Shown here: in pieces, positions 249 through 56,100 of the stretch
Layout: every line of letters begins with the position of its first letter
How positions within the stretch are numbered: position 1 is the stretch's first letter
Origin: Podarcis gaigeae
Taxonomy: Eukaryota
Reading direction: 5' to 3' (one strand)
NCBI GenBank assembly: GCA_964106915.2
Contig: OZ066917.1
Length of the DNA: 64,000 bases
The notes under the pieces: generated by a model
The model's input: the letters and a program-made list of their open reading frames with translations, nothing else
Told to the model about the DNA's origin: nothing
The model's database searches: none
Made by a program: the position numbers and the translations under genes

Positions 249-2857
<2,609 letters not shown>

Positions 2858-15072: not shown

Positions 15073-15112
15073 ATGGAACTCCGGCTGGTGACACTGCTGT
15101 TTTTTCAAGCAG
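15073..15112 (+). CDS. PLA2G10-like signal-peptide exon
   Basis: aaATGG context; MELRLVTLLFFQA then G|gtaagt; phase 1 joins the exon at 17744 in frame. Confidence 0.8.
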
Positions 15113-18100
15113 GTAAGTACAAAATAGATGCCAAGCAATGTAGATGCTGACCTCATAAAAACACCTGTGCTTTTGTGCCCCCCTTAGTGCAGAGGTTTCA
15201 TTACTGGGCTTTACAACATTCTTATTGACCAAAGCAAACAGCTTTTGGGCAGGTGAGTAAGCTTATCTTTTTCATATTGTCATCATCGCCCTGGAACTGG
15301 GCTTTCGGTGTCTGATCTTAATGATAACTGTGCTTTGTTTGAACATGTAAATAGTGCAGGCGAAACATGTTCCAATGTGTTTACAAGTCTGAAAGTTCAT
15401 AAGTTCAAAAGTTTACAAAGTACTGTATGATAAAACTCCTTCAAATGGGTGGACTTATTTCAGTGCAGTGGGATTTGCACCAGGACATTGTTCAGGCTGT
15501 TATTAGACACTGAAAAATGCTCCAGTGGAATTAGGTCAATAGAATGGCTTGGTCTTAGGTGCTTTGGCATATTGCCAGGTGTCTTTCTCATATCTGAATG
15601 ATTGTCTTTGTTCATGCTGTAACTATCTGTTTGCCTCTTCCCTGTACTTTAAACAGCGAAATGTGAATAGCTAGTTTTTATTCATCTAAAGTCCAGGGTG
15701 GATGGGAGGAAGGAAATAAAGCTATTTTTATAAGGCCCCGCTACAGAAGCAGCACACAGCAGAACCGAAGCATGTGAGACCGTTATTGCAAGGCCTTTTA
15801 CTGTAATTATTTGAGGACACCTATATTACTGGAGCTTAATGCCTGCCAGTGTAAACTTCATCGTGCCAGGAAAGTTGAGATCATAAGATCCCATCCCAAC
15901 TGCCAGGCACATTTTTGTAACTATTTTGCTATTTATCAGGTAGAGTTACAAGAAACTGGGCCTGCTGGGCACAAAAGGATACTCAGCTTGGAATTTAACT
16001 ACTTTGTAACAGGAAAGAGTGAGAATTGCATTAAGTTGCATGCTCTTTCCCTTCCTGTCAGCTCTTTCAATACTGAGAACTGAAGTTTGCAATTTGTGTA
16101 CTTTAATACTTTGTCAATCACCTTGAACGTTTATGCTGTTCTTATAGTACAATAATTTTCAGCAAGGAATTCATATATACTCCTTACTTAGATACATACA
16201 GATTGGGAGGCTTTTCTCATTTTTTAAAAAGTCTGTTAACTGCAATGTTTTATTTGTAACTAATATGTTTAGGGTGGACTCTCTGTGCCTTTAAAACCTG
16301 AATCACCTCACTGTTATGGCACAGACATTGCTGCTGTTTGTTTGTTTTTCCTTATTAAGACAGAGCTCCTGCTTACATGTTTATTAAAATTAGACTTGAA
16401 TACTGTGAAGTAGAGAAGGAATGCTACATTTTTTCAGAATGCATACTTGATAGCCAAGGTATCAAAAAACAACAGCCGGTCTGTATTAAGACAGTAGTCT
16501 TCAGTTTGAGGTTTTGTTTTTTTGGCTTGGCAGTTGTTAAATGTCCCTGTTAAATCATCCTGAAGTAGACGATGAGGTACACTGCCATTTTCCTCAGGTT
16601 TATAGTGCAGAGACACTTGTGTTTCTGAAGCCTGTTTAAGTCTTGGATTCAGCAGAATGCTTTAACCAAAGTGCCTTTCGAGTCTAAACATTTAAAGCCT
16701 ATGCAATTTCCTTAGAATTGGCTATGATGAAACACATTTTCCATTTTGCAAGAACCAAATGTGTTTATATAATACAAATACATAGATTAAAGGAAAAACT
16801 CTAAACAACGTCAAAGAAGTTCTGTAGGAAAAAATGATGCTGATCCTGATAACATTTAGACATATCTGATCCAGAATTCTGTGTGTGCATATGTAGTGTG
16901 CCCTAATACAGGCACCCGCATTCCACTTGTGCGTGACTACATTTGTGCAGGTTGCTGCAAAATAAAAAAATATATTGGCCTTCCCTTGCACTGGGCAGTG
17001 GCCCCAATCGAGGGGAGGCTTGGGGCAGGCTGGGCAACGGCCCCAGGCAACTTCCAAGCAGCAGTCCCAGCGGTGCTTGTGAGTCTTGTTAAGTTGTGGG
17101 TGAACATATCAGACGACACAGCGATTCTTTCAAAGCAGCTCTTTTATTATTTGTAAGCTGGAACAGAACTGAACTGAAGAGCTCAGTCAGCCTGCTTATA
17201 TAGTGCTCCAGAACCTCGTTACTGTAACAACTTTCTAAAACTATCTAATCACTGAACGTCACTTTCGATCCTTCATTTGCATACAAACTATCCAATCACT
17301 GAACGTCACTTTCGATCCTTCATTTGCATAACTATCTACATTATCCCCCTGCTGGCCCAGGGTGAGAACTTCAGTACATAACAAGTCTCTTTCTCGCTCT
17401 CTCCTCCCTATTAAAGTGGATTGCTCCCCACGTTATGCAAGTTCACTTATATGCGCAGGGGCCCAGAACGTACTCCCCACATTAGTGGGGGGACGACACC
17501 TGTACATTTAAGTGAAGGGAGCTAACCTGGAATGTCGTTCTCAACTGAAATGAATGGGAATGCAAGGCAGACCCTTGGTTGCAGAAATGATATGTGTAGA
17601 GTTGTATTACTCTTTGTGAGCAGAAGTGCATTTTAAAGATATTATCAATAATACATACATTAATTCAGAACTGGGAAAGTGTAAAGATTTTGAGTAATGG
17701 TTTTTTACTCAGATGCACTAAAGTTTTACTTCTGCCTTTGCAGTTTGGAATAGCGTTCTTGGGAAGAACCATTCTGTACACAAAAGAGGCCTTCTTGAGT
17801 TATCTGGAGCCATAAAGTGTGGCACAAGACGATTTCCTTTGGCATATTTAGGTTATGGGTGCTACTGTGGCCCAGGAGGAAGAGGATGGCCTAAGGACAA
17901 AACAGACTGGTAAGGACATCAGTGACATCCCCAAGTGTCATTCTTCAATTGAATTCATCCAACCTTATTTAAGACCCTTGAAATGAAATGCAGGTTTAAT
18001 TTGTGGAAGAGAAACTGTAGGAAACTATATTGTGGTTACAGATGGGGCAGAAATTTGATCCTGTTCACATTTAAAGGTGAACCTACCAAATTCACATATT

Positions 18101-19746
18101 CCAAAACAATACAAGAACCAAAACACAGCTATCCTTCAAAATTCACACTGCTCTGAAATTTGCAGTGCCTTTCTCCAGTCAAGTAATGTGTGCAAAAAAA
18201 TCATGTGCTGGGGTAAAGCATCCATAAAATGCATATGGTAGTGAAAAATAACATAAAAAATGAAATTATTTTAGGGGAAATTGCTTCACGTAAATGTGTA
18301 TATTATGCAAACTTACATAGAAACATGTACATTAAGAGGGGGGAAATGCACTAAAATGATGATGAGTTTTCTTGAGGACTTCAAAAATTGGGGGAAATGT
18401 GCAGAACAGAACTTGAGATTTGAAAATGAGAAACCAAATTTGACAGATTTGCCCATCCCTAATTGTGGTAGCACAAACTGGTGCCAAAATCACATAGTGC
18501 TGGTGAGTGAGTAGTGAGAATAATAGGTAACATGATCAGCACATAACAAAACCTGCCCTTTATTATGCCAGATGACATTACCATGTTGCTAAGTTGAGAG
18601 AATGCAATGAGAGAAAAGGAATGCTGTGTGTCCTCTTTTAACTTGATTTGGAACCAGTGGACTTTCACTAGAGATAAATTTGATTTCTTTTTTAACCCTT
18701 GCTTCACTGAAAGAAGTGGTAGGTGTAATATTTGCATGCACCATGCTCTTGCTGTTTGTTTACCAAATGAATGATTCCAGAGGGATAAATACTTAATGTA
18801 AAAATTTAATGGGCTTTCCCTGAAACACTAGAAGTACGTGAAACAATATTGTAGAGTGCCTGTCTAGCTGAAGAATTTACTTCTGTATTGGCACATGCCT
18901 CTTTTTAAATCTTGGGTGGGCCTCAGAGAAATGCTCACAAAATATACCGTAATGGGTACAATTCAATCTCTATTGCTTAAAGGTGCTGTCATGAACATGA
19001 CTGCTGTTATGGCTTCGCAGAGGAACAAGGCTGTAACCCCATAATACGTAGATATAAATGGACCTGTAATGACAATACTGTGGTATGTGGTAAGGTAACA
19101 ATTTAAATTTCATTGTACTTATCCATTTTATCTTGATAAGCAATGCATGATCTAGTGTTAGGGTCTACTCAGAGTAGACTTAAATCCACTGATTTCAATT
19201 CCATAGTTTAACCACACAGAGTGTGAAGAAGTACTTCCTTATCTCTTACCTCATAAACTTATCTCTATCCACACCATATCTCTATACACGGATTCCACCC
19301 CATGCATAATTTTGTACACCACTATCATGTCACATACTCTCTCTTTTCTAGACCAAAAAGCCCCAAATGCCTCTCCCCATATGAACAACCCAGATCCTTC
19401 AATCATCATCTGAGGACCTTCTTCATGTGCCTCCTACACAAGAGGTCTGGAGTGTGGCAACACAAGAATGGGCCTTTTCTGTGGTGGCTCCCTGTTTGTG
19501 GAATGCTCTCCCCAGCGAGGCTTACCTGGCGCCTTCATTACATATCTTTAGGCACCAGGCAAAAACGTTTCTCTATAACCAGGCCTTTGGTTGATTAACA
19601 TTCTGTGGCTTTTTAAATGTGTTTGTGTGGGGTGGTGGTGGTTATTGGTTTGTTTTTGTTTTATTATCTATTTTGTGTTCTCATTTTGTATTTTTCTGTT
19701 GTGAACTGCCCTGGGATCTTTGGATGGACAGTATACGAATTTAATC

Positions 19747-19792
<46 letters not shown>

Positions 19793-20208
19793 CTGTCCAT
19801 TGTGAAAACTGTCCCTATCTGCTACCTGTTATTGTAACTGCTTTCAGAAATCTGAGCCTAAAATTTAAGAATGACTTACTTATTTTGATTTATAGTTATA
19901 TTTCCTTCCTGGTCTATCACGATTCCCAAAGCAGCTGCAATGAATAACAAATGAATAACAAATAGACATTAACCATTTGTGGCTAGTTGTTCCAGTTTGG
20001 TGCTGTTATTCCATTTCAACTATTCACCTGGTTTTTCTCTTTTTCAGATACAATGTTAGACAGATGTCAAAAAATCATATGCCAATGTGACAGAGAAGCA
20101 GCCAAGTGTTGGAGATCTGCCCCTTTTAACCGACGCTATGCCTTCTGGCCAAATTTTCTGTGCGGCCATATTTACCCTGTATGCAGTTATGGGAAATGTA
20201 GGCATTAA
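15073..20208 (+). CDS. Group X-like secreted phospholipase A2 (PLA2G10-like), spliced CDS: 15073-15112, 17744-17909, 18983-19089, 20048-20208 (474 nt, 157 aa)
   Basis: [157 protein letters not shown]. Has a signal peptide, dibasic propeptide, Ca loop YCGxGG, catalytic HD and the group X 16-Cys pattern. Confidence 0.93.
17087..17383 (-). mobile_element. Solo LTR (297 bp) with 5-bp TSD AGTCT
   Basis: TGTTA...TAACA termini; AGTCT at 17082-17086 and 17384-17388; minus-strand TATATAA near 17196-17202 and AATAAA near 17143-17148; 47-bp tandem duplication in the U3-like part. Confidence 0.85.
17744..17909 (+). CDS. PLA2G10-like exon 2 (propeptide, N-terminal helix, Ca loop)
   Basis: tttgcag| ... 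GACTG|gtaagg; ...[14 protein letters not shown]...[19 protein letters not shown]. Confidence 0.95.
18038..18461. mobile_element. Old non-autonomous DNA transposon (hAT-like, ...GCCCATCCCTA end)
   Basis: Homologous to 53985-54320. Confidence 0.55.
18983..19089 (+). CDS. PLA2G10-like exon 3 (catalytic His-Asp)
   Basis: ttaaag|G ... TGTG|gtaagg; [35 protein letters not shown]. Confidence 0.95.
19409..19790 (+). mobile_element. L2-type LINE 3' fragment with (AAT)n tail
   Basis: Encodes an AFSVVAPCLWNALP-like L2 ORF2 C-terminus; (AAT)n at 19747-19790. Confidence 0.7.
20048..20208 (+). CDS. PLA2G10-like last coding exon
   Basis: ttttcag|AT; [22 protein letters not shown]...[16 protein letters not shown], then TAA; ATTAAA at 20333 and AATAAA at 21043. 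Confidence 0.95.
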
Positions 20209-22062
20209 GACTACTTTTTAATGGAAACCTTCAGTTTCGTTCCACTTTAAGCTCTCTGTATTTTGTATATCATTCAACTAGACTAGCAGCTTCTGAACTG
20301 TGTATGTATCTTCAGATTTCTGGAAATGACAGATTAAACTATGACCTCTACACCTATTGGTTGCACAGATTCATAGGCTTCTTGTTATATCTTGTCATGG
20401 AAAACGTACCCTACAAAAGTGTTTTTGCAATGCCATGCTATGATCTTTTAAAGAGGTGGTGCATACAGTAAGTCTGCATAACTACAGTGCACGTGCCCAA
20501 ACCATCCTGGACCTCCACAGGTTCTTTGTGGTTGGTGATGCTGGGTTCCTATAAAGTGACAGTCCTATGGAACAGGAAGTGTAAGAGAGATACTCTAAGT
20601 GCAGAAAGGCACCATAAGATCCCTGAATACAGCAGAGAGCTTTTTACTGATAGAGAACAGGAGGTTCAGCCATCTTGGCCACACACTGGCTTATTGTGTC
20701 TGGAGAAGATATAATGCTCAGTGCAACCACCCCCTTTAAATGCTTTAATATAGTTTTCTTCTTTTATTTAGTAGTGAGGATGCTATTGTAAAAGGGTTGT
20801 GTGTGTTTTTTGGAAAAGGATGCTTATCTTATGACTAAACTGTAGTCACAATTTGAGGCATATATTCTAAAAGGATGGTAAAGCATTTTTATTATACTAT
20901 TTTTAGGTAGGCTATAGAAAACACTCAAACAACTGACATTTTTGCTTACATTCAGAAAACTATATAGTCGGTGGCACATCTGGCAATTACTTTAACCATG
21001 CTGTCCAAGTTATGCTGTGGAGGAAGAAAAAAAGATTAAGTAAATAAACAATGAAGTAGAGGATATGACACAATATAATGCAAGTAGTCATTTTACAACC
21101 CATTTTTCACAATATACATTTGAAGCACGTTCAGAACACATTTTTCCTATCAAAGAATTCTGGGCACTGCCAAGGAAGCTGTGTTTCAAATGTACTTTAA
21201 AGGTATAATATGTACGCAGCCTTGTATGATCACAAAGTTAATATAGTAATGTGCTTGAGCTGTGCAAGCACTTCTGATTATTTGGCTCCACTGTAGGTTG
21301 GCCAAACCCTTGCCACAAATATAACATACAAGAGCAGCACAAAATTCATGTTAATCATGTTAATATAGAATCATTTCTTGTGTTTCCATTGGCCTTGTTC
21401 AGCTCTGCACCTTGAAGGGACCTTTTATGGTTGTTTTATTGGTCCTAAAAGAATTAGAATGGAGACAGCTGCAGCAACTCAATAACATCCAGATGAATTT
21501 AAACATGTGGCAAGCTTTTTAATCTGACTGTTCTGTGCTACACTTAGTTTCTTAGACAGAGAATCATGCAATAAGTCCTTGAAGTCAGAGCCATTGTAGC
21601 AGGCTTTGTGCTGCTACCAGCTCTAACACCATCTCAAGGACTATAATCTCAAAAGCTTTCACTCAGATTACAAACACCTATTGGTTTCACTGTAGCTACC
21701 TTCCAAGTAAGTATTTTTAGGACTGCTGTCTTAATCTTCTCAGTGCAATTCAGCTTCTTCCTTGTGTATTTGTTCAATCTGCTTCAAGAACCTTGCTGTG
21801 CCTGTTTACAGAACATTCAAACTATTTCCTCTTTAAGCGGGCTTTTTGTTTTTGTGGTGTATGTGTGTGTATGTAGACACACACAGAGAGAGAGACAATT
21901 TGGCAAAACAACCCCAAATGCTTTGAAGATCGCTGAGCATACAGATATATACAGATAGCAATTGAAGTGAACTGTTTATTTAATAAGAAAGCATAGTACT
22001 GTATGTCTACACATAGACAATATCAGAGAGATGCGACTGCAGGTTTCCTCCATCAGCTCTTC

Positions 22063-22091
22063 TCAAAGCCCAGCCTCACTGCTACCTTTAC
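22063..22091 (-). CDS. Probable terminal coding exon of the VJ-Ig gene (GKGSSEAGL*)
   Basis: Acceptor tttctattggcag, in frame, AATAAA about 80 nt after the stop. An alternative acceptor at 22203 would give GDS*. Confidence 0.5.
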
Positions 22092-23086
22092 CTGCCAATA
22101 GAAATTCCACGAGGCTATAGTAAATGCAGGGACAGGACTGGAGGCCTCCATCACTGGCTCTGCTGAGAGACCAATTCCATCAGGCTCCCCCTTCAGCTAT
22201 CACCTATAAGCAGTTACTCCATCCAGCCACTATGGTGCCCACAAGTTGTTGGGCTCCCAATGGTTGAAGTCCAGCAAAATCTGGAAGGTCAGCTACCTTG
22301 TATAGCAACCTTGAAGCTATCTATCACCAGCTATCTTGAAGGTAAGAAATTGTGCTGCAGCCTCTCTGTTGAGAGACTAGCTCCATTTGCTGAAATTTCC
22401 TCTTCTACACCATACTTAAAGCTGTCCCCCCCTTTTTTTTTGCAACTGGTTAGCCTTTCAGAAAATGAAGTGCAGAGATTTGCTTGGATCGTTGGATATA
22501 TCAGCACTGGCGATCTCTCTTAGATCTCTTTAAGTTCTTATTCAGTATAAAGCTTGTTTTTCTGAAAGCATTTGGCAACAAATATGCATTGCATCTATAA
22601 TTCTGGCAAACAACTGAGCATTTTGCTGTCACCATACCTTGGTTTGACGTTGCTTTAGCACATGGAAGGCACTTCCTCAGCTGAGGAGTTAAAACTACTA
22701 TTAGAACTAACATGCCTCCAATGCCAGCTGCCACCACGCCAATGATTGTTCCAATGGATTCTTCTATGCCAAACAATCCTGGGGGGAAATACACAGAGGC
22801 ATCAGAAATCAATTGTCTTGAATATAGGGAATTGTAAGGAAAACTCAACGCACACTGGCTGGAAGAGGCTGCACTGAGAGACTGAGGGGGCGGATTTGGA
22901 TCTATATTTGCTAAACCTGTGAGAGGAACAACGAGAGACACTCTTGTGGTGTAACGTTCTGCATTACAGACTAGACTATTTTACGTCCAAAATGACAAAA
23001 ATATCTCCCTAGGAAAACTGAGGACATTCACAGCCTAGGGGCCTTTTTAAAATAGAGTGAGAAAGCCTAACAAATATATATATATA

Positions 23087-23122
<36 letters not shown>

Positions 23123-26100
23123 CAAGAACCAATTGTGTGAATTGGAACACAGTTTGAAGAGAGTGTGACTGAGGTGGGTTGGTAGATTATGAGTAACTCC
23201 ACCACTATTTAACATTCATATTGTGCTAATATTAAGCCCTGTTTCTATACAAATAATGTAGAATGTAAGCTGTCCCCATTCCAGGGACTTTACAATCTAC
23301 ATTAAACTGACAAAACAAGCATAGGACATTTATTCCTGTTAAGAATTTATAAATATTAGGCCTGTGACATTTCTCTGGCAGCAAACTCTGCCATACAGAA
23401 GATCTCCAGCCTGGCTCTGGCCTTATGGTCTGTGCCTTCCCATGTTTTCCTAGCAAGGTAACACAAGTACTACCAAGGTTTGTACTGGGAGTGGAGGTGA
23501 GTGGGTTGGAATTGCCATTTAAGTATCACCCCTGCCCCCCCAGCCAAAAGAGGAAACAAATCAACACAAAGAACAAAAGAAGGCAGACCTGCATTAGATG
23601 GTCATGTGTTAGTGTTTATATATATATATGCAAATTTATAAACAAGTGCTATAACTGTAACTGCATTTAGATGTTCTTAGAATGTTTTAATCTGTTTAAT
23701 CTGTTTTAGAAAGTTCCTGTTTTGCTTTTTTTAAAAAAAATGTATATCTGTTTGCCGCCCTTGGCTATAAATTCAATAAATAAATAATTTGAATAGAAAT
23801 ACAATGCAGGAGATTGCTGTGGGAAATTGCAATCAAACATAACTATGCAAAAGTGTCATTTAGTACTTGAGTTAAGGTTGTAGAGCTGTGCTCCTGGACT
23901 CAGCTAGGTCATGCCCACTTTCCTCTGACTCCTTTTCCTCACTCTCTCTTCCATGTGAACTCACCACAAGAGGAGCTCACACCATGCACTTGATAGCTTT
24001 TCTGTATTTTGTAACACAAGATATTTCTACTTGTGTTCTTCTTGCTGCTGCATGGAATAACACATGAATCTGACCATTGTTGGAGTTTTGTAAGTAAAGT
24101 ATTTTAAAACTTATTTAACAATGTGGCCTGTTCATTGCAAGAGGGGTAGAAATGAGGAGCACTGTATGCAACTAAATGAGATATGAAAAGAGTTTAATAG
24201 CCTATATCCCATGCTATATTGCTGCTTGACTTTTGTGAGTTTAAACTCTGCTGCTGCAAAGTGTGTTAAGGCCTGGATTTTGTATTTAGGAACCCAGCTG
24301 ATCCTTTTACTAATTACCCTCATGTGGGTCAGTGATCTACTTTCCACTGACATAATTATGACCACATGACCTGTGTGCTTGCTCATCCATTGTCTACGTG
24401 CGAACTGTTTATGGGCAGCCTCAAGGCTCCTGCTTAACCTTTGTATAGATTTTGTTACAGATAGGTAGCCGTGTTGGTCTGCCGTAGTCAAAACAAAAAA
24501 AATCCTTCCAGTAGCACCTTAAAGACCAACTAAGTTAGTTCTTGGTATGAGCTTTCGTGTGCATGCACACTTCTTCAGTTGTCATCTTTAAACTGGTGTT
24601 AGACCAGACAAATTAAGAAAGCACTTGAAAGAGGAGAGAGAAGTAGATGATTACAGAAAGGGTGGTGGTTCTAGATAGAAATTGCATCCCAAAAGATAAG
24701 GAAGTACCAGAAAGGGGTACTAGGGGTACATACAAATGGAGAAAAGGTGGAGAGCTTAAAAAGTCAGGCTTATCAGCTTGAGGCAAAAAGTGTCATTGAG
24801 TCACGGCAAAGGCTTATGACATCTCTAAAGGTAGATGCTGAAATATTCTGCAAGAGCAACTCTCTGAACAGTGAGGTACCGGTATATAAAATGTATAGAA
24901 CTTGTGCAGAGCACCTGATTTAGTCATTCGGCTCCCTTTCCCAATGACGATGCTCAGAATATGTGACCGAAGAGTCTCAGTACTTTCACCAAGCTATTCC
25001 CAGGATTCATTGCTGGTAAAGGTAAAGGTAAAGGGACCCCTGACCATTAGGTCCAGTCATGACCGACTCTGGGGTTGCAGCGCTTATCTCGCGTTATTGG
25101 CCGAGGGAGCCGGCATACAGCTTCCGGGTCATGTGGCCAGCATCACTAAGCCACTTCTGGCGAACAAGAGCAGCACATGGAAACGCCGTTTACCTTCCCA
25201 CCAGAGCGCTACCTATTTATCTACTTGCACTTTGATGTGCTTTCGAACTGCTAGGTTGGCAGGAGCAGGGACCGAACAATGGGAGCTCACCCCGTCATTG
25301 GGATTCGAACCACCAGCCTTCTGATCGGCAAGTCCTAGACTCTGTGGTTTAACCCACATCGCCACCCGCATCCCCTCATTGGTGGTGAAAGTAGTATAAA
25401 ACCACTATTAGGTCTAGTTTGGGTGTTGATGAACAGGTTGATATAATCACAACACTGGGGGGTGGGGAGAATTGAGCGTGAGGTACTTTTTAATCTTTAA
25501 TTGCTGCCATTCATTTGAAGTAAGGAATGTCGTTGCAAAGAGTTCCACTTCTGAAAAGCTGCCACTTCATAACGATTGCATATTCTCATTACCACCTGTC
25601 AAATGAAGTGAGATGGATGAAATTAATCAGGCTGTGACTATATTACAATGGCACCTTGATCATATTTTCAGAAAGCTTGGAAGAGAAATTCTAGGAAGAA
25701 ATAACAAAAGTTCCTTTGCTGTTATTTCCCTAACATATTTTCTGCTGTGAAAGCAGTGCTTGAATTTCTGAAGAATGTGTGCGCCAGAGCTAGTTCACAC
25801 ATGTATGTATACTTCACTTAGGGACTGTGTCCTGTGGCAAAACTGAACCTGTCCATTGGCTGGGGTAACGTGGCACCAGTGGTGTGAAATGCCCTCTCTG
25901 CTGAAATATAAGAAGCTGTACCAGTGCTGGCATTTCTCTGGCTCCTGAAGTCGCATCTATTCAGGCAAACATTCTTCTGAATTGAACTTGGGATTTAATG
26001 GTTTTAATTTTAAAAATTGTTGTATTGCATATTTTAATCAGAGGCATTTTAATGTTACTGTGTATTTTAATTAGGGATTGGTTTTCACAGTTGTAAACTG

Positions 26101-29100
26101 TTTTGGCATATTAAGAGCACATAAACAAACAAAACATGTAAGTTGATAGAGTGGTACCTCGGGTTAAGTACTTAATTCGTTCCGGAGGTCCATTCTTAAC
26201 CTGAAACTGTTCTTAACCTGAAGCACCACTTTAGCTAATGGGGCCTCCCGCTGCCACTGCGCTGCCGGAGCACGATTTCTGTTCTCATCCTGAAGCAAAG
26301 TTCTTAACCCGAGGTACTATTTCTGGGTTAGCAGAGTCTGTAACCTGAAGCGTATGTAACCCGAGGTACCACTGTACTCAAATAATTAGAGACATCAGAA
26401 GCATGCCAGTGGTCATACATTAATCACACAATGATGTGCATATCAATGCATCTTACATGTATAAAACACTATTATGCCACTTTAACAATCATGGCTTCCC
26501 TGCAGTGAATCCTGGGAACTGTGGTTTGTTCAGAGTGCCAAGAGTGTTAAGAGACCCCTATTCCCTTCACAGAGCTGGAGTTGTCACAACAGGTTAACAA
26601 TCAATCCTTCTTCCCAGGGAACTCTGGGAGCTGTAGTTCTGTGAGGGGAACTCTCAGCACCCTTAACAAATGACATTTCTCAGAATTCTTTGGGAGAAGT
26701 TATAACTGTTTAAAGTGGCATAATAGTGCTTTTACTATATGGTGTGGATGTGGCCTTATATGCACATTATACCACAGACTTAAACTGGTTTCATCATCAT
26801 ATCATCTCCCTAGGTGTTTGGAGAATACAGTGGTACCTCAGGTTACATACGCTTCATGTTACATACGCTTCAGGTTACAGATTCTGCTAATCCAAAAATA
26901 GTACCTCAGGTTAAGAACTTTGCTTCAGGATGAGAACAGAAATCGTGCTCTGGCGACGCAGCAGCAGCAGAAGGCCCCATTAGTTAAAGTGGTGCTTCAG
27001 GTTAAGAACAGTTTCAGGTTAAGAACGGACCTCCAGAACGAATTAAGTACTTAACCCAAGGTACCACTGTAATGCTTTCGACAGGACTGAGCACCCTCAT
27101 CGAGCCACAGAGCTCCCAGGATTCTTTCTAGGAAGCCATGCAATATAAAACTAGAGTGTAGATATGCCCTATGGCTTGGCCATGCATCTGTCAATTTTTT
27201 TTTGATGAGCAGCATAACACAGCATGCTTTATTAGTTCATGACAGTAGAGGCTAGTCCATTAGGGTGAAGGGTGCACTGCCCCCTTTAAACTCAGTCAGC
27301 CGCCACTCAGTCTATTTTGTTTACTGCTGTTATTGAGGCTCCATCTGCACTATATAAGGCAGTATAATACCACTTTAAACAGCCATGGCTTCCCCCCAAA
27401 GAATCCTGAGAACTGTAGTTTGTTAAGAGTACAGACCCCCTTAGAAAGCTACGATTCTCAGAGCTCCCTGTGAAGAGTGATTCATTGTTAAACCTCCCTG
27501 ATAATAGTAGCTCTGTGGGGAACAGGGGTCTCCTAACAACTCTCAGCTCCCTCAACACTCCCCAGGAGTCTGGTGAGACTAGAGCATGGGTAGTCAAACT
27601 AAGGCCCAGGGGCCAGATCCGGCCCAATTGCCTTCTAAATCCGGCCTGTGGACAGTCCCGGAATTAGTATGTTTTTACATGAGTAGAATGTGTGCTTTTA
27701 TTTAAAATGCATCTCTGGGTAATTTGTGGGGCATAAGAATTCGTTCATCCCCCCCCCAAAAAATATAGTCTGGCCCCCCACAAGGTCTGAGGGACGGTGG
27801 ACTGGCCCCCTGTTGAAAACGTTTGCTGACCCCTGGACTAGAGGACAGTCTTGATTTTTTAAAGTGGTAGGATAGCGTATAGTGCAGATTGGGGCTCATT
27901 TAGAAAAGAAACAAACAAAACAAAACATTACCCAGCGCCCTGCGGATCCTGAGCTTTGTGCCACCTCCTGTCACCACATCTCCATTGGAAAGGGTCACCT
28001 GGCAGAAATAAGTGCCATGATCGCTGGTTGTCACATTTAAGATAGTCAAAGATGCATCGCCTTCAGATAAATCCCCTGTCAGGAATGCTCTGGTGTAGTT
28101 TGCCAATACAGTGATGTTGTTCTCCATTAGGTCCCTCGACCCTTTTTCATCCTCCTTGTACCATTTCACTGTTAGGTTATTCAAAGATGAGCCATGGGAA
28201 CTTTGGAACCGACATCCAAGGGTCACTGTTTCACCCTCTTTGGCTTTCTCTCTGCTTGGACTCTGGGACACAGATGGAGACACAAGACTCATTCCGTATG
28301 TGTGAAACACTGTCTTGGGGGAAGCGGCAGGTGAATGGGTTGAGACAGCTCTGTTCTCCTTGGCTGCATTTCCAACGCCAGCATAAACAGCTGCAAAAGA
28401 AGAGAGAAAGACGAATGTTCTTGGTGAGACTTACAGAAGGTAGCGATTATTTAGGGGATGTGCGGGGTTCTGTGCGTGGGCGAACTGGGTTGTGTTGGGT
28501 TTAAAGGACTGGAAGTTCTGGCTTCATAGCAGATTATAGAAAGGGAGAGAGAATAGGTAATAAATAAAAGGGTGGGTATGTACTGATTTACTTTGTGAGT
28601 CTGCTGGCAAGAGATGCATTTTCAGTTGTTTCAACCATAATTCTGGATACGGGTGGTATACATTTTTGTACTACTGCAGGGATTAGCATTAGTGCAAAAG
28701 GATTTCCCAACAATAGCTGTCAACTTTTCCCTTTTCTTGCGAGGAATCCTATTCGGAATAAGGGAATTTCTCTTTAAAAAAGGGAAACGTTGACAGATAT
28801 GTTCCCAACTCCCCCTCCTGCTCCCATGGGTGCCCTCCCATCTACTCTGGATGTTTAGAAGTCCCTCATTTCACTCCAAGATGCATTTTGATTGGCACAG
28901 GAATTGTAGAGTTGGAAGGGACCCCAAAGGTAAACAGCTATGAGGCCCTTCTAACACACACCAAATGCGTGGAGAGCTGGGCACATTGGCAGCTAGCCTA
29001 CATGGACCCACAATCCCAACATTCATTATTTCAAAGTTGGAGGTGGGGTTGTTTGAGAACTCCGCACCCCTTAACTCTGTTTCCACCCCTAACATGCATG

Positions 29101-29833
29101 AATTTTAAAAATGATAAATAAGCAGAACCAAACCATGTTGTCCGTGAAATAAGTGTTTATGCACCATAACGCCTTCATGTATGGAAACATATACATTACT
29201 GCATTTGACTAAAGCTTTTAAAAGATCACAGTTATCTAGCAGAGGGGCTCAACTGTTTACAAAATCCTTTGACCTGAAAGAGATCACTGACATCCAGCCA
29301 TCTTTGGTAGCCTGTGAAGCCAAGTGGAGAGAGAGTAACAGGTGCACTTCAAGAGAGGCTGGACCAAACAGTATAGAAAGGAAGAATAAAGACTCTGTAA
29401 ATACAACAAGGGTTTTTGCTATGGCAACTTGAGCCTGTGAGTCACTGTCATGTGTCTAGACCGACTATCTTAGCTTCATCATCCCACAGTTAAAAGGAAG
29501 ACCTATGCATAAGCATAATTAAACTGGTTCACTTTATTAAAAATGCCCTTAGAATGATCATTTGAACTATCCTTATAATTTCATTCCCTACTTTATTTTC
29601 ACAACAATTTTACGTGGTACATCACAATTATCCTTATTTTGCAGATGGTGAACCGAGGCTAAGATATTATAAATTGGCAAAAGTCAACGTTTTTCTTGTT
29701 ATTGTTGTCCTGGTACCAGATATGCAGACAGTGCAGCAACATCAAAACACAGGGCTTATATATTTGCAGTTGCCAAGCCCTTCTATAGATTCTGGACTTT
29801 TATTTTGTAATTTAGTTCATAAAATGTATATAC

Positions 29834-29868
<35 letters not shown>

Positions 29869-32153
29869 GAAAAAGAATACAATGAGATTATCAGTAATTA
29901 AAAAACCCAGTTTTAGCCACATGACCCGGAAACTGTCTGTGGACAAACGCCGGCTCCCCTGGCCCATAAGCGAGATGAGCGCCGCAACCCCAGAGTCGGT
30001 CACAACCGGACCTAATGGTCAGGGGTACCTTTACCTTCACCTTTACTTAAGACATTTTAAAAAATTTAAATAAACAATAAGTGAAAACCTAGATTAAAAT
30101 GCATGACAACAAGCTACATATCTGGATAGACTTCCTTAAACAAAAATGCATTTAGTAGGTGCAGAACAGAGTACAGTGAAGGCACTTGCCCAATGTCAAT
30201 AGGCAAGGAGTTCCAAAGTTTGGGTGCTGCTACACTAAAAGACAGAGTCATCCCCCCCTCCCCAAATGTGGAATAAGTATTATGTAGCACTGGTAACTGC
30301 ACCAGTTCCATAGATCAAATTTATTTACAGTAATAAGATTTTTTTTTACTTACAGAATTGCCTTTCTGTTTCAATTTAGCACTGAAGATTGGGTTTCCCT
30401 TGCAGGAAGTGGCAGGGCAAATTGAGGTGTGGATAAGCACATGGCTTGGTGGGGATTCAAATCCTAATTTCCCAGGTCTTTGTCCGATACTCTAACCACT
30501 ACACCACACTGGCTCTTAATAGTACAACCAGCTTGATTCAAATATTAAACCTGAAGTGTGTGTGTTTCAAGCTTTGCTGGAAGCCAAAGATTCCCATCTT
30601 TGGTTCAATTACCAGCTCATTACCTAGGCTTCACTGTGAAGGTCGCCATGGAGGACTTGCTCTTAACATTGCAAAAGGTTATTAGTTCACTTGTATTTAT
30701 TTATATTGTCCTCCCGTAATACAAGCACACAGGAGTGTCCCTGTGTGCATCTGTGCAATGTTGGAAGGCAGGGTGTTGCTGGCATCCTGACATCTTTTTG
30801 TTTTCTAGATGGGAGTGTCATACACAGAATTTGGACAGTTCTTTGAAATCAATATGTGAAACCCAGCCCACCACCATCAGCATCATCACTTCATCTTCGC
30901 ACTTGCCTTAGGGATGGCTGTTGCTATGCTTTAGAGACAGTAGAAATCACAGCTGGCTGTAATTGTCCCTCCAGCTTCTAGTTGCAACAATCCTATCAGT
31001 CCTATTTCTCCCTCTTTTGCCTGCCCACTTATCCATGCCTATAGTTGCACAGCTTTTATTGCCTCCTGAGGTCACACACAAAGCTTTGGCCCGGTTGTAC
31101 ATTCCCCTTGGTTTCTGTTTCCTTCAACGCCATTGTGTCCTCAAGCCTCCATTTTTTTCATGCCACTGTTTACTTTATCCTACTTTCCAGCATTTACTAA
31201 ACCCAGGCATTTGACACCCTCAACCTATAACAGTATCAATATTCACTCCACTACAGATGCATTAGACACAAAGGAGCCTTATTCTCTTTGGACTTGGTCA
31301 CCCTAGGGTTGCATATCCAGGCAATAAACACATTACAATACTGTGTCCTCCTTAACTGATTTTGTGACAAATGTTTATGCATAACCTCGCAAGATCTCTT
31401 CAAATTGCAGGGTGAGGGAGGACACAGAAAAAGTGTATTTATAGCAGCTCTCTCATTAGGGTTTGCAGTCAGTACATCACAACAAGAAGAGACATAAAGT
31501 CCTAATGATACAAATCCTGAGGACAAATTTTCCCAGCTAAACCCCTTCTCTAAAACTCCCACATTCTGTCTTTAAGTAAAAAGGCAACATAATTATAGCT
31601 GCTTGTTGAGAAGCAGAAATGGGGGGGTTGACTTCAGATGTAAAAAGATTAGCACAGAAGCAACTTCTCTGCCTTTAGGATATATTTTTTAATGGAAAAC
31701 TGTGTGCCCCCCCTTTTGTTTAAAAATCACCTTATAAAACCAAATGTCATAAATTATAGAACCATAGACGTAACAGAATGTGAAAGACTAAAGACTGTCT
31801 ATCATAATTACAGATTCATATGCTTCAACCACCTTTTACAAAATAGCCTATAGACCAATAAGATACAGCCCAGATCACAACCTACTCAGACTGACTCTAT
31901 GGATGTTACTCAAAGCTATGTTCCATTGTGTTGAGTGGAGCTTACTTGCATCCAGACAAGTAAGAGTGCATAGGATTGCACCCTTGGTTTGCCACAAGCA
32001 ACTATAAGAAGAAACCACAGATCCCCTCTCCCTGCTCCAATCTCCTAAAAATGAAGGTACTGTAGTTCATTAGCTCAGTTACTTACCCAAACAGATAGAA
32101 ATCAGAAGACGGGGCACTGCCCAGCTGTAGGATTTCAAATTCTGCTTGATCAT
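22063..32153 (-). CDS. Orphan single-VJ-domain Ig-superfamily type I membrane protein (NCR3/NKp30-like). Exons 32153-32087, 28390-27932, 22778-22638, probable last exon 22091-22063 (about 231 aa)
   Basis: Leader MIKQNLKSYSWAVPRLLISICLAVYAGVGNA; V-set with C, W and DxGxYxC plus J-like TGGGTKLRI; TM IGTIIGVVAAGIGGMLVLIVVL. All introns are GT-AG, phase 1. Minus-strand AATAAA at 21975-21980. Confidence 0.85.
22638..22778 (-). CDS. VJ-Ig gene transmembrane/cytoplasmic exon
   Basis: tttccccccag|GA ... CAAG|gtatgg; 141 nt; GLFGIEESIGTIIGVVAAGIGGMLVLIVVLTPQLRKCLPCAKATSNQ. Confidence 0.88.
23074..23121. repeat. (TA)n(CA)n microsatellite
   Basis: Read directly from the sequence. Confidence 0.9.
24455..24578. 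mobile_element. Penelope-like element terminal fragment
   Basis: gtagccgtgttggtctg...gcaccttaaagaccaac...agctttcgtg...cacttcttcag resembles squamate Penelope ends (recalled). Confidence 0.55.
25018..25374 (-). mobile_element. Near full-length Sauria SINE
   Basis: Reverse complement of GGGATGCGGGTGGCG...(ACCTTT)n; imperfect TSD TCATTG(C/G)TGGT at 25007-25017 and 25376-25386. Confidence 0.92.
26149..26374. mobile_element. Tc1/mariner-type MITE, family A
   Basis: TIRs and TA flanks. Confidence 0.88.
26445..26756. mobile_element. Palindromic PIF/Harbinger-like MITE
   Basis: Long imperfect inverted arms (cactattatgccacttta / taaagtggcataatagtg); relatives near 8005, 27336 and 45270. Confidence 0.6.
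26828..27069. mobile_element. Tc1/mariner-type MITE, family A (opposite orientation)
   Basis: TIRs and TA TSD. Confidence 0.9.
27585..27835. mobile_element. hAT (Charlie-group) non-autonomous element with perfect 8-bp TSD GACTAGAG
   Basis: GACTAGAG at 27577-27584 and 27836-27843; termini CATGGGTAGTCAAAC / GTTTGCTGACCCCTG. Confidence 0.85.
27932..28390 (-). CDS. VJ-type Ig domain exon with N-terminal S/T/P-rich extension
   Basis: tcttcttttgcag|CT ... CTGG|gtaatg; 459 nt; ...PSVSQSPSREKAKEGETVTLGCRF...VKWYK...DASLTILNVTTSDHGTYFCQVTLSNGDVVTGGGTKLRIRRAL. Confidence 0.92.
29834..29866. repeat. (TGAT)n microsatellite
   Basis: Read directly from the sequence. Confidence 0.9.
29916..30046 (+). mobile_element. 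5'-truncated Sauria SINE
   Basis: gccacatgacccggaa...gagatgagcgccgcaaccccagagtcgg...ggtcaggggtacctttacctt. Confidence 0.85.
30060..30320 (-). mobile_element. L2-type LINE fragment
   Basis: Minus ORF contains FSVAAPKLWNSLP. Confidence 0.6.
32087..32153 (-). CDS. VJ-Ig gene leader exon
   Basis: ATG at 32153; MIKQNLKSYSWAVPRLLISICL then G|gtaagt; phase 1 completes a signal peptide with AVYAGVGNA. Confidence 0.75.
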
Positions 32154-45800: not shown

Positions 45801-47140
45801 CATGGGGAAAGCATAATTTGAAAAACCTGCAGAAAAACAGTGGCCTGGGTTGGAAAACCCTTTCCTCCTGGATTTCTTTCTCTGTGCAATGCAGGAGCAA
45901 AACTGTACCCTCCCACCTTGCGTACTGGGTGTGTCAGCCCTGCAGGCTATACATGCACAGCTGTAATGTTTAAATATAACATAACACTTGTTAGAATTCA
46001 GTATGTGAAGGCCAGCTGAGTTCCCTCATACATTATGAGGATTGACTATGCAATTTGGACCGACACACCTTTTCCCCCTGCTAACGTTACACCCACATGT
46101 GGATATCTAGGTTAGGTGATTTGAGCAGGAAGGAGGAATCCTGATTTCCAGCACAAATACAAAGATGATCAGAAAGCATCACCTGAGTGGAACTGCATTT
46201 TGTGAAGTTTGTTGCAACAGCCATATTCTATCCATGTTTCCTCAAAACAAGTCTTGCTGAGTTTGGTGGGGCTGACTCACCTCTGACTGTATAGAACTGC
46301 ACCTAAGTCAGGATCAGTACTTGGGGAAATCTCACCAAATTCACTGTGTGACATGTCTCTTTGTCAGATGCTGTGGGAGACAGTGGTCAAAGAGTTGCAA
46401 ACAACACTTCATATGGCTCTGGGCATATAAAGGACAAATAGCTGCAGAGGGCTTATATTTCTGAGGTTTAATGGGAATACAAAAGAACGGGCAATAATGT
46501 ATTTCTCAGAATACATTTACAGTACATGGCTCAATAATACAGAGGAAGTCATTCCCCCAAATAAGCAAGCATGGCATGGGTACCGGAGAATCTTGCACAA
46601 ATGCTGCTCATTGACTTCTGCTGGGTCTGTTCTGACCCCTCTAGTATATCTGTTTCTCTCTGCCAATTAGCAGGACATTGGAGAGAGCTTACCTCGGAAT
46701 GTTATGTGTCTTGTGGTGATTTAATTCCCATCCTAAAACTACAAGATGTCAGACAGACAGATACACACACACACACACAAAAAAAAAAAACATACACACA
46801 TATATAAGTATGTATATAAAGGGACCCCTGACCATTAGGTCCAGTCGTGGACGACTGGTGTTGCGACACTCATCTCGCTTTATTGGCCGAGGGAGCCAGC
46901 ATACAACGTCCGGGTCATGTGGCCAGCATGACTAAGCCGCTTCTGGCGAATCAGAGCAGTGCACGGAAATGCCGTTTACCTTCCTGCCGGAGTGGTACCT
47001 ATTTATCTACTTGCACTTTGATGTGCTTTCGAACTGCTAGGTTAGCAGGAGCAGGGACTGAACAATGGGAGCTCACCCCGTCACGGGGATTTGAATGGCC
47101 GACCTTCTGATCGCCAAGTCCTAGGCTCTGTGGTTTAGAC

Positions 47141-53100: not shown

Positions 53101-56100
53101 GCACATGGCAAAATGAGATGATAACAGTAATTTCCTTTTGTGTTGTCTGTTAAACCTTGGGTATGGCATGCAAACTCCATGTACAACTTCATGGCTGGGA
53201 TTCAGGGGGCGTCAGAACTTCAGGAGGGTTTCTGCCAGATCAAAGGGAAGGCTGGAGACTGGGTTGTGCTTAAGGCAACAGTGCATGGTTAATTCACTGG
53301 GTGTGGACACTGTGCACTTGCGTTAATTCTGACACTTGTTTTTCTGCAAGGCTTTGATGATAATAAAACACAAAAACCCCTTTTTTTCTTGAACCTTTTC
53401 TTTTTGCAGATCTCAAGCTCCACTTACAAATATAGGAATGAGGAATTTAAGAGACAATTCTCGCACCTGCCAGATTTGGAAAGGCTTGTAGTAGGTAAGA
53501 GGGAAACGTTTCATCCTATGAGTGGAGCTACAAGCTGCATTTTTATATTCGAAGCAAATTTGAACCTTGTAACCTGGAAACGTAATGCCAAAAATACTGA
53601 ATGCTTTGTTGTGAAGAAAATGAAACAACTTAAAGGACGCCTTCCTTGAAGCATGCTTTCTGAAATAAATTATTATTATTATTATTATTAATACAGTGGT
53701 ACCTCGGGTTACATACGCTTCAGGTTACATACGCTTCAGGTTACAGACTTCGCTAACCCAGAAATACTGCTTCAGGTTAAGAACTTTGCTTCAGGGTGAG
53801 AACAGAAATCGGGCTCCAGCAGCGCGGTGGCAGCAGGAGGCCCCATTAGCTAAAGTGGTGCTTCAGGTTAAGAACAGTTTCAGGTTAAGTACGGACCTCC
53901 GGAATGAATTAAGTACTTAACCCAAAGTACCACTGTAATAAATTTATTTATACCCCGCCCATCTGGCTGGGTTTCCCCAGTATGTAAACTGAAACCCAAC
54001 TGTTCTTTGAAATTCACACTTTTCAGAATTTTGCAATGCAGTTCCCCAGTTAGGTAATATGCATAAAAATGCACATTCTAGGGTAAAGTGTGCATAAAAA
54101 TGTCTACAATGATGGTTTATATTAGGAGAAATTGCTTTGCAAAAATGCATGTATCTGACCAAATTGAATACAGAAATGTGTATATGCTATTAGGAGGAAT
54201 TAGCACTGAAATGCTGGTGAATTTTCATGAAGACTTATTTTTTTAAAAAGGGAACTTAACTGATGTTAAGAAAAATGAGAAATGTAGAGAAACCAAAACT
54301 GACATATTTGTCCATCCCTAGCCTTGGAACTCTGGACCTTGCCATAATGTTGAAACATTTTCAAGAAGTTCAAACAGCAGATTAAGAAGAGATCTTGGGG
54401 GGGGGGGGGCAGTCAGTTTCCAGTTCATTTGTACTTGCAGAACATCTTCTTGCTAATTTCATTTCATTTGTGCCTTGCTTGCTTGCCTTTAATTTCTCTG
54501 TGCTTGAACAGCGCTGACATTTTGCTCTTTAATCTTCTGGATGTATTTGCCTTTTGTTCTCAGAATGTTCAACAAGGCCCTGCCCTTTCATTTCATCCCT
54601 TTGCAAATCCTCCATAGCTCCCTTGTGTATTTTGCACAGCTTTCAAATGCACCCATGACACAAGCTAACTTGATCTCATTTTTAAGACATCCTTACTGAA
54701 ACATTATCTGAAGCTTTAAAATAGCCCATATCCAATAGAGAATTAGTATGGTCTGTAGTAAACAATTCCACTTTATTCTAAAATTCCAAGCTGCCGTTTG
54801 CACTGGTGTAGGAAAGCAAGCAAGCAATTTGGCTCTTTGTGTGCGGCATACTTTCCATATGACAACCATTCTGAATTTGAAGAGTAAACAGCCGGATTAG
54901 GCATGGGCTGCACTGAATGCAAGTTTGACTAGTCAAGGACAGTGCAAAGTCATAGTATTGTATTCAAAGGAAATGTTGTTATTCATTAAAATGTTTCCTA
55001 CTCTGACCTTAAAGCTTTACTGTATTGCACTCTACAGCAGTATCAACTGTTATTCTCCAATATGTGACGCGAAGTCGGGAGCTATTACATATGATAAAAA
55101 AGGAGCAAAACCTTTTAAAGAACAAAGAATGGGAGGAGAGCTACTGTAGTTCTTAATCTGAAAAAAGGCCGAAAGCACAGTTCTCAATGACACCACGCCC
55201 TCTGTCCTTGAAGCCTTCCTTCTTACTCCTAAAAGTTGAAGCTTAAGCCAGCTAAAACAGATATGCTGTGAATAGGAAAGCAGATTACCCTAGATGGAGG
55301 TGTTCAACCAATCCTTGATGGAACTGCACTCGCCCTGAAAGACCAAGCTTGGGTGTGCAGCCCCCAGATTGTGGGGGCTGAAACTGCTTCTTATCAGCTT
55401 CAGTTTGTTTGCCGTGAACCTATTAAGAGACGTTGAGCCATGCCACAATTATTCATGCACTAGAGATTGCCAGGCTAGACTACTCCGAAGCTTTCTACAT
55501 GGGCTTGCATTTGATGATAGTTCAGAAGTTACAACTAGTACAGAATGCAGCTGTCTAGCTACTGGGGCCAGGAGGTATATGTTAAACATATACTTAGCCA
55601 ATTGCGCTGGTTACCAGTGTGTTTCTGGGCCCAATTCAAAGTGCTGGTGATGACATTAAAGTCCTAAATGGTTGGGACCAGGTTATATTATGGACTGCAT
55701 GCACACACATTAACCTACTCATACCCTCATACTACTCAGGTGCCTGTGAAATAGGGTTGCCATATTTCAAAAAGGAAAAAAAAACCAGGTTTCCTTAGGG
55801 AAACCCCAAAGTTATTGACAAAGCATCACATTTTGGAAATTCCCCAAGGATGTCATCTCTACCTTTGAAATCCCGGTGATGTCCAGGATAATAGGGCGTA
55901 TGGCAGCCCTATTGTAAAAACTATTAGGCTTACAGGTACATAGAACACTGCCTTTTCTGCGGCGGTCTCCCGGTTTTGGAATTCTGCTCTGAGTGATGTT
56001 AGGTAGGCCTTTAACAACTTTTAAACAGCAACCCCCCCTTTTTAAATCATGCCCTTTTAAGGTCAACTTTTGATGCTGAATTAAAAGGACTGCTTGCTCT

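Follow-up and report, generated by a model that had tools for sequence, protein, structure and literature searches.

A germline-joined VJ-type membrane immunoglobulin gene of Podarcis gaigeae and its single-copy family in jawed vertebrates

The stretch analysed here (the window) is 64,000 nucleotides of contig OZ066917.1 of Podarcis gaigeae (assembly GCA_964106915.2), with no N runs. It contains a gene for a membrane protein with one immunoglobulin (Ig) variable (V) domain whose last strand is joining-like (J) and encoded in the germline, hereafter the VJ gene. The gene lies on the minus strand, with the coding sequence (CDS) running from 32153 to 21010 in four exons (Table 1). The CDS has 672 nt and encodes 223 amino acids (aa), ending in ...ATSNQA. 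A frame and splice check of this corrected model gave GT-AG borders and phase 1 for every intron. The acceptor and the donor, with the boundary marked by a slash, are ttttgcag/CT and CTGG/gtaatg for exon 2, and cccccag/GA and CAAG/gtatgg for exon 3. The exon 1 peptide is the same as the N-terminus of the closest orthologue, Zootoca vivipara LOC118085263 (protein P0001), and its ATG is the first in frame past a stop. The V exon is 94% identical to this orthologue, as are 211 of the 223 residues of the whole model. The window contains no second copy, as tblastn with the V and transmembrane exons returned the gene itself only. Homology searches used single exons or orthologue proteins, and the joined 223-aa model served only for the frame and identity check and for the tree.

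The initial annotation of this locus had proposed a gene with a leader, a V domain, a transmembrane segment and a tail. Open reading frames (ORFs), Pfam matches and spliced contigs confirm it on the minus strand. However, the proposed 231-aa model was wrong at three splice sites, as follows from orthologue proteins, blastn of gene ends and RNA contigs. The start of the V exon moves from about 28309 to 28390, so that the exon also contains the last part of the signal peptide and an extension of about 30 aa. The transmembrane exon starts at 22778 and not at about 22914. The last exon had been placed at 22063-22090, within what is now intron 3, whereas the actual end is CA followed by TAA at 21014-21010, and the gene extends about 1 kb past 22063. 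This last exon was located by blastn of the orthologous gene ends of Elgaria (L002), Tiliqua (L003) and Rhea (L001) against the window. All of them read ...cag/CATAA or CATAG, their last-exon homology maps to 21031-20854 and not to 22063, and the orthologue proteins end in ...QA.

The gene is real, expressed and spliced. Four RNA runs were aligned to positions 22500-28400, and two of them, from two related lizards and two studies, contain the junction of exons 2 and 3. In run X1 (organism A), a cDNA contig of 1057 nt and depth 22 abuts 22638-22777 directly with 27931-28391; the same join is present in run X5 (organism B), in a contig of 709 nt and depth 11. Thus intron 2 is excised at the corrected acceptor and not at the one originally given. 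The X1 match stops exactly at the corrected acceptor of the V exon; outside the stretch used for alignment, the contig continues for 368 nt towards the leader and for 88 nt towards the 3' end. The latter 88 nt presumably represent exon 4. The match of the X5 contig runs 10 nt past the same acceptor (28391-28400, the end of the aligned stretch), which may be retention of intron 1 or alignment slop. In another species, a 3.4-kb Logan contig (L005, SRR29449358) contains an uninterrupted 224-aa CDS of the same family and is a processed mRNA. Spliced reads and a conserved ORF are thus both present in other squamates.

Table 1. Coordinates of the VJ gene and of other features in the 64-kb window
Feature	Coordinates	Strand	Description
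Exon 1	32087..32153	-	ATG 32153-32151; 22 codons + 1 nt of signal peptide MIKQNLKSYSWAVPRLLISICL; donor gtaagt; split leader
Intron 1	28391..32086	-	3.7 kb, phase 1, GT..AG borders
Exon 2	27932..28390	-	459 nt; end of signal peptide, N-terminal extension of ~30 aa, entire V-set domain with fused J-like strand G
J-like motif GGGTKLRI	27945..27968	-	Germline-encoded G-x-G-T-K-L beta-bulge, strand G, inside the V exon
Intron 2	22779..27931	-	5.2 kb, phase 1, crowded with interspersed repeats; spliced out in RNA contigs X1 and X5
Exon 3	22638..22778	-	141 nt; juxtamembrane GLFGIEES, Gly/Ala-rich transmembrane helix IGTIIGVVAAGIGGMLVLIVVL, tail TPQLRKCLPCAKATSNQ
Intron 3	21015..22637	-	Phase 1; contains the wrongly predicted last exon
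Exon 4	20888..21014	-	CA completes the last Ala codon; TAA 21012-21010; 3' untranslated region with AATAAA 20893-20888
Signal-like string	31137	-	Intron 1; weak match to a recombination signal
Signal-like string	44096		Weak match to a recombination signal
Phospholipase A2 gene	15073..20208	+	Secreted type; last coding ORF 19987-20208; tail-to-tail with the VJ gene
Claudin-domain gene exons	255..2857	+	Weak Claudin_2 matches
ORF fragment ...YKYRNEEFKRQFSHLPDLERLVV	53389..53460	+	Head-to-head with the VJ gene
Repeats in intron 2	24273..25454, 26046..27227, 27622..27818		Interspersed
Related repeat copies	29891..30040, 46847..47110, 53696..53920, 57273..57590

The V exon reads ...YFCQVTLSNGDVVTGGGTKLRI..., and the ORF at 27900-28310 holds ...GETVTLGCRF...LTVKWYKEDEKG...DASLTILNVTTSDHGTYFCQVTLSNGDVVTGGGTKLRI. 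It matches the Pfam V-set domain PF07686 (E 6e-17, from profile position 1 to 108/109). The canonical V residues and the J-like motif noted in the initial annotation proved to be conserved throughout the family: Cys82, Trp99, Cys152, the pattern D-x-G-x-Y-x-C (D146, G148) and G-x-G are invariant in 37 orthologues. Within the J strand, none of these orthologues, which range from shark to bird, deviates at G164 or G166, and T167, K168 and L169 are at least 90% conserved. The only cysteines of the ectodomain are the Ig pair. In an AlphaFold2 model of P0001, which is 95% identical to the window protein (alignment A2), residues 61-173 form a confident V domain, mostly with predicted local distance difference test scores above 90, and segment 27-56 is disordered. 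The four sequons listed in the initial annotation are found at N94 (NLT), N114 (NIT), N120 (NYT) and N141 (NVT), and the protein is likely N-glycosylated. The N114 sequon is invariant and lies on strand C'.

Alignment of this domain with the lambda light-chain V domain (VL) retains Tyr36 and the YxC motif. Several positions are altered: Gln38 is replaced by Glu, the Pro44 turn is deleted, and Thr stands in place of the Phe98 of FGXG, a position that is small or polar in the whole family. Since these changes and the invariant sequon on strand C' all affect the pairing face, an antibody-like V-V dimer is unlikely. It seems that the J motif is retained for its beta-bulge rather than for canonical V-V pairing.

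Recombination signal sequences (RSS) were sought in the entire window as a heptamer, a spacer of 12 or 23 nt and a nonamer. None was found beside the V exon, in agreement with the initial annotation, and the whole 64 kb gave two weak RSS-like strings only, neither of them adjacent. The string in intron 1 consists of CACAATG, a 12-nt spacer and ACAGAAACC. Situated upstream of the V exon at a distance of 2.7 kb, it adjoins no V-coding sequence and was judged to be a chance occurrence. Germline fusion of V and J, together with the absence of RSS, makes rearrangement impossible. In the cDNA contigs the V exon is spliced straight to the transmembrane exon, with no exon for a constant domain of the C1 type between them. 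Thus the features of a rearranging V segment of Ig or of the T-cell receptor (TCR) are missing: there is no RSS, the J part is not separate, and a C1 exon is lacking.

The membrane part is short. AlphaFold2 predicts a single helix at residues 184-212, and only about 10 residues (RIRRALGLFGIEES) separate it from strand G, leaving almost no stalk. The transmembrane segment, IGTIIGVVAAGIGG, is rich in Gly and Ala and has small-xxx-small packing motifs. As the initial annotation had stated, it is uncharged: there is no Arg or Lys ahead of the cytoplasmic LRK, and the flanking charges outside the membrane are Glu-Glu. The tail, TPQLRKCLPCAKATSNQA, has 17 aa, no Tyr and two conserved juxtamembrane Cys, which are probably palmitoylated. 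No tail Tyr was found in 16 sauropsid and 10 fish orthologues, and hence neither an immunoreceptor tyrosine-based inhibition motif (ITIM) nor an activation motif (ITAM); this also stands as originally described. Longer database isoforms are extended at the N-terminus only. The exon encoding the transmembrane segment and the tail has no Pfam match, and no cytoskeletal or PDZ motif was recognised in the tail. The product is a type I membrane protein, probably a glycoprotein, of the non-rearranging VJ class, without an autonomous signalling motif.

The members found in fishes retain the GxGTKL strand and a motif running across the membrane, (L/I)FG(I/M/F)(E/K)E(S/T)(I/V)G...G(V/I)xAA...(I/V)(I/L)V(P/T)xxR(E/K)x(L/M)(P/N)C. 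The pairwise ratio of non-synonymous to synonymous substitution rates (dN/dS) is 0.23-0.38 in the V core, 0.10-0.21 in the transmembrane exon, and 0.6-1.2 in the fast-evolving N-terminal extension of about 30 aa. Sauropsid column conservation is 0.94 in strand G/J and in the juxtamembrane segment, 0.92 in strand C and 0.90 in the transmembrane segment; the loops similar to complementarity-determining regions (CDR) have 0.70-0.77. The gene is under purifying selection, and this includes the loops, which are not diversifying.

A word search with the V exon retrieved 150 clusters, 61-94% identical, from squamates, turtles, crocodilians and birds. These proteins are either called 'uncharacterized LOC' or have conflicting automatic labels: HAVR2, KV5AF, SYG1, IGSF6, NCTR3, MPZL3. 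A profile of 16 full-length sauropsid proteins (A1) was then compared with 1.84 billion representatives clustered at 50% identity. It matched proteins of Polypterus (E 3e-44), Latimeria (4e-44), Callorhinchus (1e-37), Mustelus (2e-31), Protopterus (2e-31) and Scleropages (4e-31), and more weakly of Aldrovandia and Umbra. All the fish matches are without a gene name. The initial annotation had described an orphan gene, perhaps a reptilian one. This did not hold: the family is a single-copy one of jawed vertebrates, and it occurs in squamates, turtles, crocodilians, birds, coelacanth, lungfish, bichir, some teleosts, shark and chimaera. Among its members are chicken LOC418355 and elephant shark LOC103177565. 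The maximum-likelihood tree of 37 members matches the species tree, with the window protein sister to Zootoca, followed by Rhineura.

The genomic context is conserved as well. In Rhea and Elgaria a gene with GRAM and VASt domains (GRAMD1C-like) lies head-to-head with the VJ gene, and a gene for a 162-aa phospholipase A2 (PLA2) lies tail-to-tail with it, as in the window. The order in Polypterus is the V-ATPase subunit A gene (ATP6V1A), the VJ gene and the GRAM/VASt gene (GRAMD1C). In Mustelus the VJ gene adjoins ATP6V1A. Conservation of the flanking genes GRAMD1C, ATP6V1A or both supports orthology of the VJ genes of these taxa. Thus the expectation of orthologues beside GRAMD1C held in Rhea, Elgaria and Polypterus; the Mustelus orthologue was seen beside ATP6V1A, and there was no amphibian among the matches listed. 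In Scleropages formosus (L004:2839-6320) neither GRAMD1C nor ATP6V1A occurs within 10 kb of the orthologue. Its neighbours there are a cystatin gene and another V-set gene (261 aa) in divergent orientation, possibly a teleost paralogue.

No mammalian or amphibian member was found in the V-exon word search (120 listed of 150 matches, all sauropsid) or in a word search with the transmembrane region (120 listed of 127 matches, all sauropsid). The same is true of the named single-V matches below 1e-30 (38 matches in total), all of which are from sauropsids or fishes; P0110 and P0040 come from sequencing-run assemblies. A widespread mammalian orthologue is excluded, because the databases hold hundreds of mammalian proteomes and just 30 and 7 matches lie beyond those listed. 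A relic may persist in a few lineages (monotremes, marsupials, amphibians). In human 3q13.31, ATP6V1A and GRAMD1C are direct neighbours, with no Ig gene known to lie between them. Family searches also turned up no one-to-one orthologue to a characterised mammalian gene, in line with the initial annotation. A literature search for the LOC identifiers of the family and for a VJ locus at ATP6V1A/GRAMD1C found nothing.

Outside the family, the nearest sequences belong to large receptors with several V domains, and these domains align with the profile at positions of about 56-175, J strand included. Such receptors were found in lampreys (P0187, P0328, P0329), turtles (P0141, P0149, P0166), lungfish (P0153, P0121), horn shark (P0218) and also bichir. 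The lamprey proteins are uncharacterised and have E of about 1e-19 summed over three domains. The automatic names of these multi-V proteins ('titin-like', 'pIgR-like', 'protein turtle-like') are clearly wrong.

Elsewhere in the window, the last exon of the PLA2 gene matches PF00068 (E 4e-6). The PLA2-VJ pair is a conserved sauropsid arrangement, as the same 162-aa PLA2 lies next to the VJ gene in Rhea and Elgaria. The claudin-domain exons lie at the start of the window. In human, the claudin-domain gene CLDND1 lies far from GRAMD1C, so that the sauropsid arrangement differs from the adjacency of ATP6V1A and GRAMD1C in Polypterus and human. The short ORF head-to-head with the VJ gene has no Pfam match. 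It looks like an exon ahead of the GRAM domain of GRAMD1C, given the GRAM/VASt neighbour in Rhea, Elgaria and Polypterus. Among the interspersed repeats, two types of element have left ORF-like remnants, KVKVKGPLTIRS...LAEGA... and MLQDENRNRAPAAQWQ.... The repeats in intron 2 are multi-copy expressed elements, because their depth in RNA runs reaches hundreds to thousands of reads, with many loose ends.

The VJ gene is the lacertid orthologue of an unnamed VJ-transmembrane family, and the evidence tips modestly towards the protein acting as a ligand-binding or regulatory membrane subunit, held through its transmembrane helix to a partner or to itself. The glycosylated V domain would bind a conserved, probably endogenous ligand via its CDR-like face. 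A conserved ligand is suggested because the loops are under purifying and not diversifying selection. The protein would be incapable of signalling alone, and most likely it would be a ligand-binding or regulatory subunit of a membrane complex, with packing of the helix holding it to a partner or to another copy of itself. This subunit role is proposed because no other parts are as well conserved from shark to bird as the acidic FG(I/M)EES juxtamembrane segment and the Gly/Ala-rich helix. Of the two forms of this reading, association with a partner through the helix is preferred, and it is offered tentatively, as possible rather than probable.

Several points weigh against the subunit reading. 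The partner was proposed solely from the pattern of conservation, and a glycine-zipper helix can equally fit homo-oligomerisation, as in MPZ. Both palmitoylation and N-glycosylation are predicted from sequence motifs. Two bulk RNA-seq runs of raw reads (X23 and X24, organism A) have essentially zero depth on the exons, so expression is tissue-restricted. The same two runs are what could be said for a pseudogene or an annotation artefact. This explanation is refuted by the spliced cDNA contigs, the frame check of an intact ORF and dN/dS well below 1, and with retention for more than 400 My it is extremely improbable. An immune role of the protein is unproven.

The protein could instead be an autonomous adhesion molecule or a surface ligand, similar to MPZ or B7. 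Its V domain would then bind in trans, either homophilically or to a receptor, and the helix would only self-associate, with no heterologous partner. We consider this rather unlikely, though by no means far-fetched. Structure alignment to cluster representatives puts the MPZ ectodomain (Z 16.8, rmsd 1.6), antibody VL (16.7), TCR delta V (16.5) and SCN2B (16.0) at the top. As these scores are tied, the fold cannot separate an antigen-receptor-like protein from an MPZ-like one. Language-model neighbours are single-V type I proteins, with clusters of MPZL3, SCN2B, CD83 and MPZ, as well as ICOS and the family's own mis-named cluster. The architecture, with one V domain, a minimal stalk, a Gly-rich helix and juxtamembrane Cys, is the same, and strong conservation is unlike an arms race. 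On the other hand, identity to MPZ and the sodium channel beta subunits is 20-22%, compared with about 30% to VL. In the MPZ and CTX groups the V domain is split over exons, whereas here it occupies one exon together with the J motif. The very short tail also argues against adhesion, as it has no Myelin-P0_C or other domain and no recognisable cytoskeletal or PDZ motif. A receptor of the NKp30 type, activating through coupling of its transmembrane segment to CD3zeta, FcRgamma or DAP12, would share the VJ-type V domain on a transmembrane anchor and the short signalling-incompetent tail. It is nevertheless very unlikely, as the helix has no Arg or Lys, the sole charges are the two Glu outside the membrane, there is no stalk and no linkage to the major histocompatibility complex (MHC). 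NKp30 was absent from the best 60 sequence matches in the PDB and from the best 50 fold matches, no direct pairwise comparison having been made.

An evolutionary interpretation is compatible with the readings above. The gene would be a surviving non-rearranging relative of the V gene into which the transposon of the recombination-activating gene (RAG) moved, comparable to UrIg/UrIg2, NKp30 and PRARP, or else an unrecognised gene of the PRARP type. The V and J parts in a single exon and the split leader fit this interpretation. So do the best sequence matches, which are Ig lambda and kappa VL, followed by TCR V and the variable domain of the shark new antigen receptor (vNAR), and the age of the gene, which predates the split of cartilaginous and bony fishes. 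Against it, there is no C1 domain, unlike in UrIg and in Ig and TCR chains, similarity of fold does not discriminate from MPZ and the sodium channel beta subunits, and the gene is a single one without ITIM, while PRARP is reportedly a pair of genes with ITIM. PMC12227049, PMC10751288 and PMC11599192 treat the VJ class in this context, and absence from mammals, where the VJ gene was not detected either, is reported for PRARP in the latter two. However, the relics are placed in the MHC or the antigen-receptor complex (PMC12227049, PMC10751288), and the VJ gene lies outside both. Taken together, this interpretation is improbable. So is its strongest form, a long shot in which the gene has survived for at least 450 My as an undescribed relic of the VJ stock ancestral to the V domains of Ig and TCR, kept at ATP6V1A/GRAMD1C and lost in mammals, with the conserved transmembrane segment marking an ancient partner.

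Few germline-joined VJ genes are known (NKp30, CD8, CD79, SIRP, NITR, PRARP, UrIg), and they are central to the question of what the RAG transposon invaded. The family adds a single-copy VJ-transmembrane gene whose nearest sequences are light-chain V domains, whose locus is older than the split of sharks and bony fishes, and whose transmembrane segment is conserved above the loops. The lack of a name and of literature may stem from its non-detection in mammals. It offers comparative immunologists a specific protein that can be tested in chicken, lizard and shark. If its role proves not to be immune, the gene shows that ordinary tasks in housekeeping or adhesion are open to a VJ domain of the light-chain type. 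If it is indeed a relic, it would offer an independent window on the function of V domains before RAG.

Among known systems, the V domains of Ig light chains and TCR are the closest in sequence. The best PDB sequence matches by phmmer are Ig lambda and kappa VL (domain E about 1e-7), aligned through FGGGTKL. Foldseek gives lambda-6 VL with a TM-score of 0.87, rmsd 2.0 A and about 30% identity, and then TCR V and a vNAR. The VJ gene has in common with them the split leader, the Cys-Trp-Cys core, DxGxYxC and the GxGTKL strand G. It differs in being a germline fusion of V and J without RSS and without a C domain, with the V domain directly on the transmembrane helix. Moreover, the pairing residues at positions 38, 44 and 98 are changed, and purifying selection acts on a gene that is single and invariant.

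The likeness to MPZ, the MPZL proteins and SCN2B is one of architecture only, as listed above. Some members carry the automatic NCBI names 'MPZL3' or 'sodium channel subunit beta-3-like'. The ectodomain identity is low, and the J-type strand, the single V exon, the lack of Myelin-P0_C and the different locus set the VJ gene apart. NKp30 (NCR3), to which the initial annotation had likened the gene, is also a type I protein with a non-rearranging VJ-type V domain and a tail incapable of signalling. NKp30 is linked to MHC class III, has a stalk and a transmembrane Arg for CD3zeta or FcRgamma, and is present in mammals. The VJ gene has no stalk, no such Arg and no MHC linkage, its neighbourhood being formed by claudin-domain, PLA2, GRAM/VASt and V-ATPase A genes and not by MHC class III. 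Hence the comparison holds for the VJ class, and not for these features nor for the best sequence matches, which are Ig VL. What was supported is a non-rearranging V domain of the VJ type in one exon, on a transmembrane anchor and outside the MHC.

PRARP is reportedly a gene pair with cytoplasmic ITIM, forming disulfide-linked dimers. The VJ gene is single, lies beside GRAMD1C, and has no tail Tyr and no ectodomain Cys beyond the Ig pair; on this description it would differ from PRARP. In PMC10751288 and PMC11599192, which cite Fu et al. 2019 (J Immunol 202:1992), the PRARP genes are non-rearranging joined-VJ membrane genes of the Ig superfamily from chicken, not in mammals, and are listed beside NKp30, CD8, CD79, NITR and SIRP; PMC10751288 cites them as MHC-linked. 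Another candidate counterpart, cd28x (PMC11599192), was rejected, since squamates lack it and its synteny block is another one.

The joined-VJ genes, namely CD79, NITR, SIRP, CD8, NKp30, PRARP and UrIg, are central to the debate on the origin of antigen receptors (PMC12227049, PMC10751288, PMC11599192). In this set, UrIg and UrIg2 of elasmobranchs resemble the VJ gene in having an ancient non-rearranging VJ exon and a split leader (PMC12227049). Their conservation exceeds that of rearranging V genes, and they have been considered relics of the antigen-receptor precursor (PMC12227049). However, they are secreted multidomain dimers of the VJ-C1 type, linked to the MHC or the antigen-receptor complex and confined to elasmobranchs (PMC12227049). 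The VJ gene, in contrast, encodes a VJ domain on a transmembrane segment only, is linked to ATP6V1A and GRAMD1C, and extends from chimaera to birds.

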